Shown: positions 1 through 38,064 of the stretch, piece after piece
Layout of the letters: each line of letters opens with the position of its first letter
Numbering within the stretch: the first letter of the stretch is position 1
Assembly: GCA_025603075.1 (NCBI GenBank)
Contig: MU626415.1
Location: forward strand, 1 to 46,877
Length of the DNA stretch: 46,877 nt
Source of the DNA: Neoconidiobolus thromboides FSU 785
Taxonomy: Eukaryota; Fungi; Entomophthoromycota
Reading direction: 5' to 3'
The notes under the pieces: model-generated
Told to the model about the DNA's origin: nothing
What the model saw: only the letters and a program-made list of their open reading frames with translations
Database searches by the model: none
Translations under genes and position numbers: made by a program

Positions 1-768
1 ATCTCCTGACATAGTCCAACAAACATTGTTTCCTGGTTCACCAAAGTAAGAACCCTTAGCACCATCATCACACTTAAGATAGTATGAGTCAGCTGGTGGA
101 CATGTTGGTGGTTTGGTAGGTTGTGGGCAAGTAGTGATATTAATCTCTCCAGTTGAACATACACCTTTAACTGGAGCTCTACATGTGTAAGCATCAGCTT
201 TTCCGCCCCAACAATCGTTACCATCAGTTTTACCGAAAGTATGTGTCTTTCCATCTAAACCAGTACAAGTAGTTTCTGGTTTTTCCTTTGGTGGACATGG
301 AGGAGGAGTAGGTTTAATGTATTTTTTAGGACAAGTTGAGATATCTTTTTCATTAATAGCACATTTATCATTAGTCTTTGGACCACATTTCCATTTGCGT
401 CCACTCTTTTTCCAACATACATTATCGCCATAGTCATAGAAGCTAGATTTGCCACCAGAATTCGTAGTACATTCTATATCTGCAGAGTTTCTTGGTGGGC
501 ATGCTGGCATTGGTTCTTCACACTCTTCTTTGACGTTAGAGTAACCTTCAGCACACATACCATCTTTACCAATAAAACTACAAGACCAATTTGCATCGCC
601 TTCCATCCAACATTCTGGACCTCCAACCATATCATAATTATAGGTACTTCCATTTAAAGTACAGGTGTCCCCATCTAATGGACAATTGGCTTCGTCATAA
701 TACCCCTTAGCAGAAACAGCCAGTGCTCCTAGGAGTGCAGCAATTAATGGATTATTAATTGATTTCAT
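1..768 (-). CDS. Secreted cysteine-rich tandem-repeat protein, paralogue of 4112..5371; 3' end runs off the window
   Basis: Manual translation from the ATG at 768 is open for 256 codons to base 1: MKSINNPLIAALLGALAVSAKGYYDEANCPLDGDTC...CWMEGDANWSC...CPPKEKPETTCTGLDGKTHT...CPPADSYYLKC...NNVCWTMSGD. It has a hydrophobic signal peptide and at least 3.5 six-Cys repeats. The ORF track omits it because there is no stop in the window. TATAAAAAGGG lies on the minus strand at 843..853. Confidence 0.9.
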   Translation of the reverse strand, partial: MKSINNPLIAALLGALAVSAKGYYDEANCPLDGDTCTLNGSTYNYDMVGGPECWMEGDANWSCSFIGKDGMCAEGYSNVKEECEEPMPACPPRNSADIECTTNSGGKSSFYDYGDNVCWKKSGRKWKCGPKTNDKCAINEKDISTCPKKYIKPTPPPCPPKEKPETTCTGLDGKTHTFGKTDGNDCWGGKADAYTCRAPVKGVCSTGEINITTCPQPTKPPTCPPADSYYLKCDDGAKGSYFGEPGNNVCWTMSGD

Positions 769-3700
769 TCTAAATTAAGGGAATAAATTATACAGATACA
801 CAGTACCAATCCCACTTTTAAGCAATAAATGTTGTAAAGTTGCCCTTTTTATACTTTTTTTGCTTGACATTTTACTATTTGGTTGATTTTAACGCTCTTT
901 CCCATTAAGTTACCAATAAAGATAAATTTAGTGTAATTGAAAAGTTGATCATTTTAAATTTCAGTTTTCTGTCTATCAAATAAGTTTATTAAAAATTTGT
1001 ATGAAGATCTTTCTATTACTATAGAAAATAGCCCCCCATCAAATGTGCCAAAAAATAGGAATAATAAATTTAAATAAACTTAGCGATCTTTTTTTTTATG
1101 GCTCTTTTTTGGTAAATGATAGCTCAGGATATTACAGTAACCACAGCCGTTAGATACTAATTATTCTTTAAATGTTAGTAATTTGTTACGCAATAAAAAA
1201 TATAATGTAGTTTGGATTCAGTTTTAGATATTGTTAAAAATACACACATTAAATGTAATTAACTGTTCTTTGATTTTAATATATTATATAATAGCACAAG
1301 AATTGTCATTGCGTCTAAATTGTATTAAATTAAATTGTATAAGGTATACAGCTTTAGTTCTATTTCTTTTTTATTTAACATATTTTAGTGTTATACCATT
1401 GATTTATTTAAATCTCTTATTAAAGCTTAAAAAATATGTACAATTAGCTTTTAGGGTACCTTTTGGAATTTTTAAAACTATCAGTAAATATTAAAGCTGA
1501 TCTTAAATAACTTGATTTTTTAAGTAAAAGCAATTGATTGCAATAACAAATATCTTTTACGTTTAAAATCAAACATTGTTTTAGAGTAAGTATACTTTGA
1601 TTTTCCAATTCTATACCTTTGTCATCAATTCTCATCAAAAAACAGCTATAATGAGAAACCCTCAAATAAGTAAAATAATTAAAATTGAACTAAAGTACTG
1701 TCCAACTTAGATAGTGCTATTTGTGATTCAGTTCGTTTGGATAAATCGCGACCTACTTAGCAATAGCTTTTATAACAAATAGCTTGATTAAAGTATGTTT
1801 TTAAGGCTTGGACATGAGATTTAACTTAATTTTATTAAAATTTATTCTCAAATGAACGGTTAAATGAATCTCATTTTACTCAAATTATCTTTACATGAAT
1901 TTCAAAATGTCAAAATAATTTAAAGTCCTTTATTAAAACCAAGTTGTTGTGAAGTTGTCAGATCTTTATTTTAAAGACTAACTTTTTAAATCTAAATTTG
2001 TTTCAAGACTTTACGATTTTAATGTAATTTAAAATTGTTGTTAATCACTGTTTGAAAAATGGTTCGATACGAAATAAAGCCATATTTTAAAAAAATCCCA
2101 CTCAGGATATTTCTAGTTACACCACTTGTGGCTGGCCTCTAGACTTCATAATTCTTTAAAGCTAGCATTTTATATAATATGCTGCTCTTTTAAAAACTCA
2201 AGGTGAATCCAGTATATTTTATTCAAAAGCGAAATATTTAATGAGGGTATTAGTAATTTTTTAAGGCTTCCAAGATAGAATTACATCTTGTAATAAAATG
2301 TCAATTCAAGCGATTTTTTTTTCTGAATGTATAAATTTATTGATGTTAGTACATTTTTGATTTTTGATTTTAAAAAAAATCTGCAGCTAAGCCACTCCTA
2401 ATATCTAGATCTGAATATTGTTTTATCTGGTTTAAGCTACTTTTCACCTGCTGCTAGGAACACCTATAAAACATAAGTTTCCGATTAAAGTGCTATACAT
2501 TGCTATATCTAAGGTTTTGGATTTCATTTGATATAATCTATATTTATATAATGTCTTCAACCTACCATGACTATAACAAGAAAAAAGTGCAATCAAACTG
2601 TAATAAAATAATTCGATTATCGTTGAAAATAAAAATAGGGAAAATCAAAACATTGTAGTAAAATTAAAATAATTGCGGTTAAAACTGTAATATTTTTGCT
2701 ATAACCATGATTAGTTGAAAATACTAATTTTAAACTATTGTGATTATTTTTTTCTAGTTTTTTTGGTAATTATAAATTTATTAAATATTTATTCGTTTTT
2801 AAGGTATAAAAATAATACTTATTGATGCTACAATAACCCTACAAGTGATGTAAACTCTTCGATTATTAGCCATTTCTAGGTATTGCTATTATAGTAACTA
2901 CCATTGTACCGAAGGATATTAGTCCAATACTCTAATTTTGATATTACACAAATATTATAGTGGTAAAAGGAATATTTTTATTATAAATTAAATATTTTGA
3001 AATAGTTTTTAAAAAACAAGTAGACGTTATAGATATGGTATTGTACTTTATTTGAAAATTCAAAACACAGAGTATAAACAATACTTGACTATAAAGACAG
3101 CTTTACTTAAAGTACTTTAAGAACTTAAATGTTGGTAGGATAGAATTGAAAATACTATACTAAAAATATGATTTTATTATAGTCGAATAAAACCTTCACT
3201 CGCTCACCTGTTGCATCCACTTACCTATGTGCATTATTATCTTTATCCTCTTTCATTATACACTCATAATCTTAACGTTTGAAGCTTTACATTTTAAATT
3301 TTTTTAAAAAACATTCAAAAAATCCTAAAACTACAAATGAGATTTTAATTTGTGTATTTCAAATAGTTGACATAAATATTTTTATGAATCTTTCTAAGTT
3401 TCATCGTTTTGGTTACATTTTATAATATAATGCTCTTCCTTTATGTATTTGTTGTGATATACTTTTATTCTATTCTATCTTAAGTTATTAAATTTGACAT
3501 TTAAATATTCAATATTAATAATCTTTTTTAACTTGTAGAATAAAACTTTCAACAAAACAACAAACTTGACTCATTTTCAAAAGTATGATTTTGTTAATAT
3601 TTGAAGATTATAGATAATAAAAATCTTTTGTGAAGTAGCAGCAATATTTACAGATAAGTATTTGTCAAACTGATTTCTCCAATTTAATTCTAGTATTTTC

Positions 3701-4111
3701 GGCAGAATTTCAACATAAAATTTACTTCAATAAATGGCTAATAATTTTACAAAAATTGGTTCAGCTGTGTTCCAATTTTGGACTGATTTTCCTTTGATTC
3801 TTTAGCATTTTGGTTTGATCATTAATTGAAGTGAGAATCAATACCGTTGATCAATTTTAACTATCTTTTAACATTTTGTTAAGATCAAGTTATAATAAGA
3901 AATAAAGAGAGCGAAATAGCTGATTTTAAAAAAATAAAAGACTATTTTCATAAGTGATAAACTAATTGGATTATCATTAAAAATCAAAATTTCAAAAGTG
4001 GCTCATTAAAATATATGTTATAGTCTATTTTGAAATTGTTCTCCTTTGTTTTTACTATTACTTTCTTAATTCTGTAGATATTGACTATCTATTATATTTT
4101 TTATTTTAAGA

Positions 4112-5371
4112 ATGCGTTCCTACTGTAGTTTATTACTTTTAAATGTTTTGTTGGGGGTAAAAGCTGGGGATTATAACAGTGTTTCTTGTCCACCAGTAGG
4201 TGCTACTTGTAAGTACCAAGATGATGTTTTCAACTTAACAAATCAAACTACTCCTCCATGCTGGAAGGGTGATGGCGAGGATGGTTACGATTGTATTCCA
4301 TTAGAAAGTGATGGCGAATGTAATGAAGGCTACATTAATATAGTGCAATCTTGTAAAAAAATTGATCCACCTAGTTGTCCAGCTAAGGATCAAGGAAACT
4401 TATCATGCAAGGCTCATGGATTAATTTCCGATACTACTGCATCTTCACCTGGGGCTAACATATGCTGGTATAAAGATGATAATGATTCCTGGAAATGTTT
4501 ACCAACTATAGATAACAATGAATGTGGTGAAGGACAATTAGACATAACTACTTGTAAGTTTGATGAACAAAAAGATGAAGCACCTAAATGTCCACCAAAA
4601 GACAAACCTTCCACTCAATGTACTGGTGACAATGGGAAAACTTATACTTTATTTAGACCTGGTAAATTCCATTGTTGGACTTTTAAAGAAGACAAATGGA
4701 GTTGTACCTCTAAAAGTTTTGGTACATGTGACAAAAATGCTTTGGATATATCTACTTGTGAAGTAGAAAATCCAGCGCCATCATGTCCTGAAGAAAAATA
4801 CTATAATTTAAGATGTAAGAATGTCAAATCTGGCGAAACTTATATTGCAGGCAGCCCACAAGAGTACGTCTGTTGGGCCAAAAATCGTAAGCAAAGCAAC
4901 GAATGGGGATGTACTAAAAAATCAGATAATGGTGAATGTAAAGATAGTCAATTAGATATTAGTGCTTGTACATTTTCAAAACCAAAGGAACCTTGTTTAC
5001 CAAGAGAAAGTAAATGCACTTATAAAAACAAAGAGTATACTATCTTCGATCCAACAGCTCCTAAATGTTGGAAAAAGACAGATTATGGATACGAATGCTA
5101 TTTACGTAAAGAGAAGGAGGTTTTGTGTCCATCAGGATTTACTGATGTAAAAGTTTGTTATCCTAAATGTCCCAAACAGACAGCTACCTGTGATACTATC
5201 AACGATACTTATTCTCCATTGAGAGCTCTTTCTTCTTTAGACCCTGAGGCTTTGTGCTGGGATCCATCTAATGGTAATGATGATCCATTATCATTTAATT
5301 GCTTCAACAAAATCAAAGGAATCTGTCCATTAGGATCAGCCGACATATCTCAATGCGGTGCTAAATATTAA
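4112..5371 (+). CDS. Secreted cysteine-rich protein with six 6-Cys repeats of about 60-70 aa, 419 aa, intronless
   Basis: Signal peptide MRSYCSLLLLNVLLGVKA is followed by six units C-x6/9-C-x(16-21)-CW-x-C-x-C-x5-(D/N)I-x-x-C (36 Cys), separated by Pro/Lys-rich linkers. Confidence 0.92.
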   Translation: MRSYCSLLLLNVLLGVKAGDYNSVSCPPVGATCKYQDDVFNLTNQTTPPCWKGDGEDGYDCIPLESDGECNEGYINIVQSCKKIDPPSCPAKDQGNLSCKAHGLISDTTASSPGANICWYKDDNDSWKCLPTIDNNECGEGQLDITTCKFDEQKDEAPKCPPKDKPSTQCTGDNGKTYTLFRPGKFHCWTFKEDKWSCTSKSFGTCDKNALDISTCEVENPAPSCPEEKYYNLRCKNVKSGETYIAGSPQEYVCWAKNRKQSNEWGCTKKSDNGECKDSQLDISACTFSKPKEPCLPRESKCTYKNKEYTIFDPTAPKCWKKTDYGYECYLRKEKEVLCPSGFTDVKVCYPKCPKQTATCDTINDTYSPLRALSSLDPEALCWDPSNGNDDPLSFNCFNKIKGICPLGSADISQCGAKY

Positions 5372-6563: not shown

Positions 6564-7421
6564 TTAATCAAAAAGTTTACGTGGTACTTCTGAATCAATG
6601 TAAGAAGGTAATGGGATATTTAAAGCCTTTAAAGTGATAGCAAAGATATCCATATTACGAACAGAATTGTCTAATTTTTTTGGAGAAATACCAGGTCCAG
6701 AAGCACCAAATAAGACTTGGGTTTCTGCCTTTGAATTTCCACCATGTCCTTTACCAACACCACCATGATCAGCAGTCATTAAAATTAGAGTTGAGTCTCT
6801 TAACTTAGCTTCTTCAAGCTTGGCTAATATTTTCCCAATATAACTATCGACTAATTTATATTCTGCAATATACTCCTTACTTAACCATCCTTTACTATGC
6901 CCAGTTTCGTCAATATCACCAAAATAGACAAACATAAATTTGGAGTTTTTGCCACGTGTGGTAATATAATCTAAACTTGAGGTAAAAACAGTTGTATCGT
7001 TAGAAGTCACTTTGTCTAATTTTAAGCCTTCTTCGGTAAGACCTTTGTTTAATGGAGCCCAAGAGACAATGGAAGCAATGGTAGCATTAGGATCATGATT
7101 TAAGATAGTTTTAAAAACAGTTGGGTACTCATTCTTATTATAATAGTGGTCATTAATGTTACCATTAGTAACGCCATGTCGTTCTGGAGTTACTCCAGTT
7201 AGCATAGAACCCCAATTTTGACCTGACCAAGTTGGTTTCATGGCTTGAGCATTGCTAGTATAAGCACCAGACGCAAGGAGTTTATGAATGTTTGGAGTTT
7301 CAATTTGTTGGTAAAAATTACCAGCACCATCTAAACCGATAAAGAGGACTCTTTCAATTTTACTGCTTTCAATAGCGTTAAAGCACAATAAACTGGAAAC
7401 TAAAATATTAGCGACTTTCAT
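6564..7421 (-). CDS. Secreted alkaline phosphatase superfamily enzyme (type I phosphodiesterase/nucleotide pyrophosphatase-like), intronless
   Basis: N-terminal signal peptide. Metal/catalytic motifs are FIGLDG, PTWSGQNWGSMLTG (Ser nucleophile position), DIDETGH, TADHGG and GHGG. Confidence 0.88.
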   Translation of the reverse strand: MKVANILVSSLLCFNAIESSKIERVLFIGLDGAGNFYQQIETPNIHKLLASGAYTSNAQAMKPTWSGQNWGSMLTGVTPERHGVTNGNINDHYYNKNEYPTVFKTILNHDPNATIASIVSWAPLNKGLTEEGLKLDKVTSNDTTVFTSSLDYITTRGKNSKFMFVYFGDIDETGHSKGWLSKEYIAEYKLVDSYIGKILAKLEEAKLRDSTLILMTADHGGVGKGHGGNSKAETQVLFGASGPGISPKKLDNSVRNMDIFAITLKALNIPLPSYIDSEVPRKLFD

Positions 7422-13554: not shown

Positions 13555-16538
13555 ATGACCCACCAAAGTTTGAGTTCAACTTTGAAAATAAATACAGGTG
13601 ACAACACCTCAAAAGAGATTAATGTATTCCTGTTCGAAGACTTATTTAAAGAAAGAGAAGAAGCGGCACCTCAATCACCAACAATAATGAACAAGAAGAA
13701 GAGTTTACCTCAATATGTGCCATTCAACATAACTATGCTAAGAAAAAAGCATTTTATTAGTGAAGTGAATAAAAATGCTAATTTAAATACAAGACAAAAA
13801 TTTGAATCTCCAGCAGTACCAAAAACCTTTATTAGAAAGATAAAACCAAGTGATTTTGATCCTTATTTATCTAGGATCACTTCTTCTTTTAATCAACATC
13901 AACATAGTGCCTCATTTAACCTTCCAGTGCTCCCAGAGGTCGAGAATGCGGCTGAAATTGCAGTAAGTTATCAGGAAAATGATTTACCGGACTTATCTCA
14001 GCTTTCAGAAACCTTTTTTGATACCGAATTTTCTTTAGAAAACGCACGAACATTCAATCTATTATGCTCAATGGCAAGGGATGAAGAGGTAGTTGAAAGT
14101 GAGTTAAATTTGGTGACAAGCACCAAATTACAGGATAAATTATCATTGAACCTAGATAAGGTGGAGGCCCATCTAGTGCATGAGATCAGTAAGAGATCGG
14201 ATGGGTTCTTTTCAGCTTTAAATAAATTGAAAGGTTTGGAATTAGAAACAGAAGAAGCCATTGAAGGTTTCCAAAGGCTTCGTAGCGCTCTTGATGATAT
14301 TAAACAACAACAGGCTAAAGACTCAATAAAAGTTTTACAGCTTCGACAAAGGAAAGAGAATTTATTTAAGTTGGATCAATGCTTTGCCTTATTGAATAAA
14401 ATTTATGCTACCCAACCGGCAATCAAAGCGCTTTTGGATGAAAAGGATTCGTTGGGCGCACTTAAATTAATTTTAGGAATAGAAGATGAGTTGGGCTTTA
14501 AAGGGGGAAAGTCATCCCCAGTTTCATGGCAGAAATATATAGAAGATAATGAAACGTCACCGAAGTTAAAAAACGTGTTGTTTAAAGAATTAAATCCTTC
14601 TAAAGGAGAACAAGGTAAAAAGGAAGAGTTTGGCTTGGCACAATTGAAATGTTTAAAGAATTTTTGGAGTTTTCTGGATATTTCTAAAGCCCAGGCTATT
14701 GTTCAAATGGAAGAGTACTTTGCCACATTGATACTTAATTTTTGTAAAAGGACAGGGAATCAAACATTTAATTTTAAGAAAGAACTAGATCACCTTTTAG
14801 GTGGTGATGAAGGCGAGGAAGAATTGAATTTGGTTAAAGGACAGTTGAATCAAGCCGAGTTAGAACAGCTGAAAGCTTCTTTAAAACCTTTGCTTAGAGG
14901 CCTTAAGATTTCTAACCATTTGCCAGCTGCTATTGCCAGCACTTCAACGAAGCTTATTGAGCTCTTACAACAGCAGATCTTTGACGAGATAATTGGATTT
15001 TTCCAAAACAACAACATTACTGCATTTAAAAACATACCGTTTGATACATCGGATTGGGAGTAAGTTATTATTTATTTATCGTATGCTAATATTTTATAAA
15101 AATAAAACACTAATATTAATTCATTAGGGAAAGTAGCTTTGGTCAAGAGTTGATTAAGATTGATTATGATGATTATTTTAAAATTTTGATATTAAGCTTT
15201 TCAATTTTTATTCAGCAAATTAAGCAAATTAAAAAGTTGGAAAGTATCATTGAGGACCAGGTGGATAGCTTTAAAAAAGAGCTTATAAAAGAAAAGGAAC
15301 TTGAAGATTTTAAGTTATTTAAACAGGAATGGATTAAAGAAATGCAAAGTTTAAGCTTTCAAGTAAGTGAAAAGATACAGTTAATTAGCAATCAGTTGAT
15401 CAGCCTTAGAATCAAAGCAAATGAATATATCCATCCAAATTTATTTTATAAAGTGTACTTTTTAAGTTGGAGATTAATTACCCATATGGAAACAATCACT
15501 GGGAAAACAAATTCTTTATTAAGGACTTCGATTTTTACGAGCGCTAAACTATTTTTAAATATTTATCATCAAGAAAATTTAAAGGCTATAACAAATAGTA
15601 TTGAAAAAGATAATTGGAAACCAGTACCTATTGATATAAACAATCAAAGATCCGTAGATTTAATACAATTTTCGCTTCATAATGAATTCAATCACCCTAA
15701 TCTTAATTACGACACCTCTTTTTTAAACGAGGAACAAAATGTTACTAAAAACAAGTCTCAACATACAACCGATAAAATAATGATTGCGGCTATTGATTAT
15801 TATGCTACTGAAAGTGGTTTGTGCCTTTTATCTTACCTTCAAGACTACCTTAAAGCCAGTATTAATATGCCAGCAATTTCTCAAGAATTGGTAAATCGCA
15901 TTGTATCCATTCTAGATCATTATAATCGTGGTACTTATCGAGCTGTTTTAGGTGCAGGAGCTACTAAAACAGCAGGTATGGCTAAAATTTCGGCAAAACA
16001 TATATGCTTAGCTTCACAAACTTTAGGTTTGTTTGTCGGACTACTACCCTCCCTAAGAAGATCACTCGAGTTATCTTTAGGTCCCCAAAGAGCCTTATTA
16101 GTCATGCAGTTGGATCGTATAGCTAGTGATATGGCCGAACATCAAAACCAATTACATAGCAAGCTGGTAGCTATTTTATCGGATAATGCGAATAACTATT
16201 TACAACAAATGGAAAAGATAACATTTGATCAATGTCCAGCTGATGAAGGACAGGTCAATCCATATATGAGGAAATTGGTTCAAGATGTACAAGCACTACA
16301 TAAAATTATGATCAAGTTTTTGTTGCCGAGGGATATACAAAAAATTATTACGCAGGTGAATTTGGAGTATGCTACATCACTTGAGCAAAAGATCGAAAAG
16401 CTAAAAATTAAAACACCATTAGGGAAGAGGAATTTATTAAGAGATGTTCAGTACTTAATTAAGGGATTGTCGTTGTTGCCTACTCAAATTTCGAATTTAC
16501 ATCATTTAGAAGTAGTGGTCAACGATCTTAAACTCTAA
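13555..16538 (+). CDS. VPS54: GARP complex subunit Vps54
   Basis: LQDKLSLNLDKVEAHLVHEISKRSDGFFSAL and the C-terminal Vps54 motif VLGAGATKTAGMAKISAKHICLASQTL. The two ORFs are joined by an intron at 15060..15128. Confidence 0.9.
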
Positions 16539-36801: not shown

Positions 36802-36883
36802 GGTGCTATGGCCGAGTGGTCTAAGGCGGCGCACTCAAGTTGCGCTCTCTTCGGAGGCGTGGGTTCGAATCCCATTGGCACTA
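36802..36883 (+). tRNA. tRNA-Leu(CAA), intronless, long variable arm
   Basis: Acceptor GGTGCTA/TGGCACT, D arm GCC GAGTGGTCTAA GGC, anticodon arm GCGCA CTCAAGT TGCGC, variable arm, T loop GTTCGAATC; upstream TATATATAAA and downstream T-runs. Confidence 0.92.
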
Positions 36884-37991: not shown

Positions 37992-38064
37992 TGATCCCGC
38001 CAGGGATCGAACCTGGAATCTTCTGTTCCGTAGACAGACGCCTTATCCATTGGGCCACGGGACC
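37992..38064 (-). tRNA. tRNA-Arg(ACG)
   Basis: Minus strand GGTCCCG TGGCCCAATGGATAAGGCG TCTGT CTACGGA ACAGA AGATT CCAGG TTCGATC CCTGG CGGGATC A forms a complete cloverleaf with a downstream T-run. Confidence 0.95.

Follow-up and report, generated by a model that had tools for sequence, protein, structure and literature searches.

The window analysed here is contig C158 (46.9 kb) from the AT-rich, 24.6-Mb assembly (799 contigs) of Neoconidiobolus thromboides FSU 785. One end of it carries two intronless head-to-head genes, A and B, whose products consist of a secretion-type start followed by tandem copies of a cysteine-rich module. Judged by their sequences, the two genes appear to be paralogues in a family that was seen only in Entomophthoromycotina among 1.84 billion protein representatives, and the module itself, probably held by three disulfides, has no detectable relative, occurs in at least four genera and reaches about 93 copies in this one 24.6-Mb genome. 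The features of the locus are as follows (i-E, independent E-value of a match to the module profile).

4112..5371, plus strand: gene B, complete and intronless, 419 aa: signal-peptide-like start, then six modules, then a tail of 4 residues (open reading frame, identical to GenBank model P0001)
4112..4168, plus strand: signal-peptide-like N-terminus of gene B, residues ~1-19 (Kyte-Doolittle hydropathy 2.73 over 10 residues, heuristic)
4187..4354, plus strand: gene B module 1 (i-E 2e-13)
4376..4555, plus strand: gene B module 2 (i-E 2.6e-13)
4589..4759, plus strand: gene B module 3, modelled alone with AlphaFold, pLDDT 89 (i-E 1.3e-15)
4784..4969, plus strand: gene B module 4, modelled jointly with module 3 (i-E 5.1e-12)
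4994..5158, plus strand: gene B module 5 (i-E 1.6e-15)
5168..5356, plus strand: gene B module 6, which diverges most and has a long C2-C3 loop (i-E 1.7e-9)
1..768, minus strand: gene A, 5' part only, 256 codons, paralogue of gene B (Met-initiated open frame; GenBank partial model P0010, 248 aa)
709..768, minus strand: signal-peptide-like N-terminus of gene A, residues ~1-20 (Kyte-Doolittle hydropathy 2.69 over 10 residues, then a small-residue site; heuristic)
520..684, minus strand: gene A module 1, C1 to C6 (i-E 9.6e-13)
331..501, minus strand: gene A module 2 (i-E 4.6e-13)
127..297, minus strand: gene A module 3 (i-E 1.2e-12)
1..102, minus strand: gene A module 4, cut short by the contig end so that it covers C1 to just beyond C3-W (i-E 1.3e-4 over model positions 1-31)
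769..4111, no strand: head-to-head intergenic spacer, 3.3 kb, 24% GC (without profile match; tblastn at chance level)

An earlier reading of the bare letters (the original prediction) had described two intronless head-to-head genes with signal peptides, one of them missing from the list of open reading frames (ORFs), and both the open frames and the hydropathy agree with that description. The frame of gene A is unbroken by stops and holds 3.6 modules versus the six of gene B; it is absent from the ORF list because it runs off the contig start. Both genes are also present in GenBank. All signal-peptide calls were made with the Kyte-Doolittle hydropathy heuristic, which showed no membrane-spanning segment beyond the start of either product and no hydrophobic tail at the C-terminus. 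The profile detected no further module in the 46.9-kb window, the next-best match having an i-E of 2.5. The spacer presumably holds the promoters of both genes; profile and tblastn searches for a decayed module found nothing above chance in it, fragment 3579-3801 included, and its reading as a repeat or transposon was rejected, since, one 88-bp match aside, its sequence occurs only once in the genome.

The two genes are collinear module by module, with 32-41% identity on the diagonal, and for the three final modules of gene B the counterparts lie on another contig, C246 (L027:1-1037). This contig opens mid-module, about 10 residues beyond the break of gene A at window 1-102 (minus strand), and carries a collinear 3' half. 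Because the modules are collinear and C246 begins mid-module where gene A stops, C246:1-1037 is probably the 3' end of gene A, the assembly having broken inside a repeated module pair. Similarly, the partial model P0009, at the end of contig C134, seems to be continued at the start of C226.

The module was defined from an alignment, A1, of 78 complete modules in 11 open frames of the N. thromboides genome, which were split with a regular expression and then aligned. The profile derived from A1 was used on the window, on the whole assembly in six frames and on the 1.84 billion protein representatives, with a cut-off of E ≤ 0.001 for both the module count in the assembly and the HMMER search of the representatives. 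In A1 the six cysteines and the Trp right after C3 are invariant (78/78), and the module spans 53-63 aa from C1 to C6. Pro follows C1 in 76 of the 78 modules, the position two residues before C4 is aromatic (W 56, Y 18, F 4), and Asp/Asn (76/78) and Ile/Val (69/78) precede C6 at short distance. The family motif can thus be written C1-P ... C2 ... P-x-C3-W-x-K ... aromatic-x-C4 ... G-x-C5 ... G-x-x-D/N-I/V-x-x-C6, and family membership as this motif within 53-63 residues, repeated in tandem behind a signal peptide; both window genes belong to the family so defined, with every module matching the profile. The tandem six-Cys motif that the original prediction had written down was recovered by the profile as six plus 3.6 modules, with i-E values from 1e-15 to 1.3e-4. 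Linkers of 3-11 residues, rich in Pro and Lys, join the modules, and amino-acid variation clusters at two sites in each of them, just after C2 and between C4 and C5.

The exceptions to the six-Cys pattern give information about the disulfides. All six cysteines are present in 106 modules, while 26 modules lack exactly C1 and C6; these two are either co-present or co-absent, the seeming single losses in complete modules being alignment shifts on inspection, and the other odd cysteine rows belong to cut or degenerate modules (P0006 349-408, P0021, P0023). Furthermore, C2 and C4 are jointly replaced in two unrelated modules (P0003 867-937 and P0007 270-342). Because the members of each pair are lost together, the pattern points to disulfides C1-C6, C2-C4 and, by elimination, C3-C5. 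The four-Cys core version, without C1 and C6, is found in Conidiobolus coronatus, in Massospora and in one N. thromboides gene, and some Entomophthora muscae and Logan proteins have an eight-Cys version, with the extra pair in the C2-C3 loop.

The structure predicted for module 3 of gene B by AlphaFold2 with A1 is confident (predicted local distance difference test, pLDDT, 89.0; predicted template modelling score, pTM, 0.72) and consists of two β-hairpins, followed by bridges and a short helical turn. A two-module model, obtained from 65 natural module pairs, has a pLDDT of 91.9 and a pTM of 0.67, with 86 for the linker block, which suggests that the connection between modules is fairly stiff. 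The one- and two-module models are in keeping with the beads-on-a-string build that had been proposed for these proteins. Judged by strand alternation in the predicted secondary structure, the aromatic position ahead of C4 and the invariant Trp would share the face of hairpin 2 that carries C4; this face probably packs onto hairpin 1 and forms a small core with it. The exposed aromatics of the original prediction are therefore doubtful.

No described family was matched by the module, in line with the claim that it was unrecognised. Pfam-A searches with both window proteins (E up to 10), seven paralogues and the 78 modules (E up to 1) and ten distant relatives returned only chance-level lines (CX9C, SCIMP, CHCH, Ig_2). 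Against PDB sequences, a protein query and the module profile gave no match, or COA6 at E 0.5. In word-index protein searches, the 419-aa protein and alignments A2 and A4 retrieved only the query itself or members already found, and two look-ups in the ESM Atlas gave no usable match. Foldseek/VIA searches with the models gave no match to solved folds above chance level, a result that, small disulfide-rich domains being hard to match structurally, means that no match was found and not that the fold is proven new. The profile search and the modelling of a single repeat, both proposed with the original prediction, thus led to paralogues, entomophthoralean relatives and a confident model, and to no described family or solved fold. 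In the literature on Conidiobolus, Entomophthora and Massospora, the module was not found described, and the secreted proteins called cysteine-rich there are CAP/CRISP proteins (PF00188).

One explanation is that the module is no new family but an extreme outlier of a disulfide-rich domain already described, for example EGF/furin-like, CBM14 or fibronectin type I. This appears improbable, as all such matches are at chance level, none of the 78 modules was hit by the Pfam models at E up to 1, and searching PDB sequences with the profile yielded only noise; moreover, the cysteine spacing and the proposed connectivity are unlike those described in textbooks for CBM14 and EGF. Among individual candidates, CBM14/peritrophin-A (PF01607) had no Pfam match in both proteins, the seven paralogues and the 78 modules, and the model did not show a tachycitin-like fold. 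Hevein/CBM18 (PF00187), the CBM10 fungal dockerin (PF02013), LysM (PF01476), CFEM (PF05730), WSC (PF01822) and Kunitz/BPTI (PF00014) had no Pfam match either, and no Kunitz structure was among the Foldseek/VIA fold matches. The furin-like/EGFR Cys-rich region (PF00757, PF14843) and EGF-like domains gave no profile match and no significant structural match.

At least 93 modules were counted on 16 contigs of the N. thromboides assembly. Their number per protein ranges from 2 to 18, the large open frames being 1207 aa (17-18 modules), 1112 aa (17), 774 aa (10) and 530 aa (8) long, next to several two-module proteins of ~140-150 aa. By hydropathy, all complete members have a secretion-type start, without a membrane-spanning segment or hydrophobic tail. 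Two GenBank models are probably inaccurate. P0002 (L022:5291-5377, minus strand) starts at an upstream Met without a hydrophobic core, and its true start is probably the second Met because a signal-peptide-like segment begins ~30 residues after the annotated start. P0005 (L023:2307-4360; contig C106, 16.8-18.9 kb) spans an N run, an assembly gap, as an intron, and in reality the gene probably extends further and holds additional modules.

The arrays are not recent. Ten internal repeats of the 1112-aa frame share 67% DNA identity, with a mean synonymous distance (dS) of 1.45, a mean nonsynonymous distance (dN) of 0.28 and a median dN/dS of 0.21, and even their invariant residues carry many synonymous differences. 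Low DNA identity, high dS and a dN/dS of about 0.2 therefore indicate that the arrays are old and that each bead is under purifying selection. The modules are confirmed as real, constrained coding sequence. That the genes might be chance open frames or decaying, non-functional pseudogenes is hardly credible: conservation effectively refutes it, with module E-values down to 1e-15, invariant cysteines in 78 modules and dN/dS ~0.2 at saturated dS, and so do the relatives in three other genera and the confident models.

Some paralogues differ at their C-terminal end. The last two modules in the C106a, C186 and C226 paralogues are of a distinct Tyr-rich subtype, in the same order, and the two-module C137 protein has this subtype as its last module, while P0005, the C106b protein, ends in a Tyr/Gly/Pro-rich tail. 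The Tyr-rich end modules lie at the following positions.

L022:2042-2386, minus strand: Tyr-rich end modules
L025:2049-2396, minus strand: Tyr-rich end modules
L028:127-474, plus strand: Tyr-rich end modules
L029:2031-2204, plus strand: Tyr-rich end modules

These modules and the tail could be cross-linking or adhesive ends. This raises the question of whether the proteins are structural glue, namely a bulk component of the conidial mucilage or spore wall that is cross-linked through Tyr by tyrosinase or peroxidase and is not a specific lectin. The proteins would then be comparable to mussel foot protein 2, which consists of tandem six-Cys EGF modules. The Tyr-rich ends, the widely varying module number and the Pro-rich linkers speak for it, as does the abundance of tyrosinase genes in a related species, 55 in C. 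coronatus (PMC12387763). However, neither the Tyr-rich end modules nor the tail occur in the two window genes, whose products contain 4.5-4.7% Tyr, and the compositional bias typical of adhesive proteins is absent. Bulk glue is a possible but rather unlikely reading.

The family is as narrowly distributed as the original prediction had supposed. Only 30 of the 1.84 billion representatives matched the profile, and they derive from N. thromboides (14), E. muscae (7), C. coronatus (2), Massospora cicadina (1) and Logan assemblies (6). All named matches are from Entomophthoromycotina, and all are annotated as hypothetical except one member of a C. coronatus cluster, which UniProt calls "Secreted protein". 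The 765-aa paralogue P0004 is 30% identical to P0031 of E. muscae over 485 residues (E 6e-61), and in both the first module is unusual in having an additional CxxC; the family must accordingly be older than the divergence of these genera. In C. coronatus only the four-Cys core version was observed, in several neighbouring genes of one 56-kb contig (P0018/P0035, P0019, P0036; CONCODRAFT_10452, 10453, 10457). The insecticidal coronatin-2 of this species was also considered as a family member, and the lead was unsupported.

Because the clade is dominated by insect pathogens, a family confined to it might be expected to act on the host. The modules would then be independent inhibitor or blocker units, directed for instance at insect immune serine proteases or pattern-recognition proteins and strung together like multi-domain Kunitz or Kazal inhibitors. 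The small secreted two-module members found in several species would suit such effectors, each module has two hypervariable loops reminiscent of variable reactive loops, and the proposed connectivity and the size of ~55 residues equal those given for Kunitz/BPTI in textbooks. On the other hand, no Kunitz, Kazal or other inhibitor family was found in Pfam at E up to 1-10, and inhibitor folds are absent among the Foldseek/VIA matches. Moreover, uniform arrays of 17-18 modules kept over a saturated synonymous distance would be unusual for an arms race, and the orthologue-like pair P0004/P0031 is retained between fungi with different hosts, a pattern more easily reconciled with a self-directed function in the wall or spore than with one specific to the host. 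Host-directed effectors are accordingly a possible reading, though an unlikely one.

The reading ranked first is that the proteins are multivalent extracellular binders or cross-linkers of a wall or spore-surface polymer, with a probability of roughly 40%. It takes this place because the architecture parallels that of peritrophins and Jacob lectins and because the family is conserved between fungi with different hosts. The proteins, predicted to be secreted, comprise a putative signal peptide and then 2 to 18 compact modules of ~55 residues on short Pro-rich linkers, without a catalytic domain, an anchor or a glycosylphosphatidylinositol-type tail, each module presumably being held by the disulfides C1-C6, C2-C4 and C3-C5. 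Outside the cell they may act as stiff multivalent scaffolds, in which the same conserved surface on each bead would allow an array to bind a repetitive partner with high avidity. This partner would most likely be a polymer that the fungus itself carries in its wall or on its spores, such as chitin or β-glucan, or else the insect cuticle. The two variable loops might tune single beads, and the Tyr-rich end modules of one subfamily may permit cross-linking.

Several observations weigh against a polymer-binding role. Neither Pfam nor the fold search gave a sequence or fold link to known carbohydrate-binding modules, and none of the 30 proteins found is fused to a chitinase, a deacetylase or another wall enzyme. 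The invariant aromatics may form a buried core instead of a sugar-stacking platform, the proposed disulfide map is derived from cysteine co-loss, and the two-module members resemble typical small secreted effector candidates.

A bolder version of the polymer-binding reading combines it with the Tyr-rich ends. Entomophthoralean conidia are forcibly discharged, and the module might have a new fold and bind a polymer of the wall or the cuticle, with the long Tyr-ended arrays forming a cross-linked adhesive or outer coat that sticks the discharged conidia to the insect cuticle. Taken as a whole, this proposal is speculative and distinctly unlikely.

The remaining genes of the window are eukaryotic and intron-split, and encode Vps54, a KA1 kinase, a ubiquitin E1 and a gamma-tubulin complex protein. 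Gene B is closely followed downstream by an intronless ORF (6564-7421, minus strand) with matches to type I phosphodiesterase/nucleotide pyrophosphatase and the sulfatase superfamily (E 1.5e-27). Vps54 extends across two adjacent ORFs at 13555-16538 (plus strand), with the N domain at 13555-15063 and the Vps54 domain at 15150-16538; the two ORFs presumably belong to a single gene interrupted by an intron or a frame change. A tRNA-Leu(CAA) at 36802-36883 (plus strand) and a tRNA-Arg(ACG) at 37992-38064 (minus strand) lie ~1.1 kb apart.

Aphids, flies and cicadas have important natural killers among the entomophthoralean fungi, N. thromboides itself being an aphid-killing fungus, and to our knowledge almost no entomophthoralean secreted protein has a known role. 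The family was overlooked because the published comparative analyses are Pfam-based (PMC11105155) and such comparisons miss families without a Pfam model. It now provides an annotation profile, a small stable domain for structure work and a list of candidates for studies of the wall, the spore surface and host interaction. If the fold were confirmed as new, a scaffold would be added to the disulfide-rich mini-domains, and if the adhesive coat were real, the family would give the first molecular handle on spore attachment in this neglected group of insect pathogens.

The closest parallels in architecture are the peritrophins, which are CBM14 arrays of insects, and the Jacob lectins of Entamoeba, which are made of tandem six-Cys chitin-binding domains. 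Like the window proteins, they have a signal peptide followed only by tandem six-Cys modules of ~55-70 residues with conserved aromatics, linkers rich in Pro, Ser and Thr, a module number that varies between paralogues, and no catalytic domain. CBM14 itself differs in that its disulfides are C1-C3, C2-C6 and C4-C5 and its cysteine spacing is another one, and neither a CBM14 nor a hevein structure was among the fold matches. With the Kunitz/BPTI arrays the module has in common the ~55 residues, the six cysteines and the occurrence in secreted tandem arrays, and it would also share their connectivity if the proposed map is right, with C1-C6 tying the module ends together; the Kunitz fold, however, is a hairpin with a C-terminal helix, whereas the module is predicted to have two hairpins and only a very short helical turn. 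The connectivity C1-C6, C2-C4, C3-C5 is common to Kunitz, kringle and ShK domains, and none of these gave a match to the module in sequence or predicted fold.

The best structural neighbors, at chance level, are in the furin-like/EGFR-HER2 cysteine-rich region, which is also built of stacked β-hairpin units stapled by disulfides. Finally, the family resembles the lineage-specific small secreted cysteine-rich effector candidates of other fungi in its restriction to a clade, its multigene nature, its local duplications and its "hypothetical" annotation, but differs from them in that one defined module is repeated up to 18 times and is kept across at least four genera under purifying selection.

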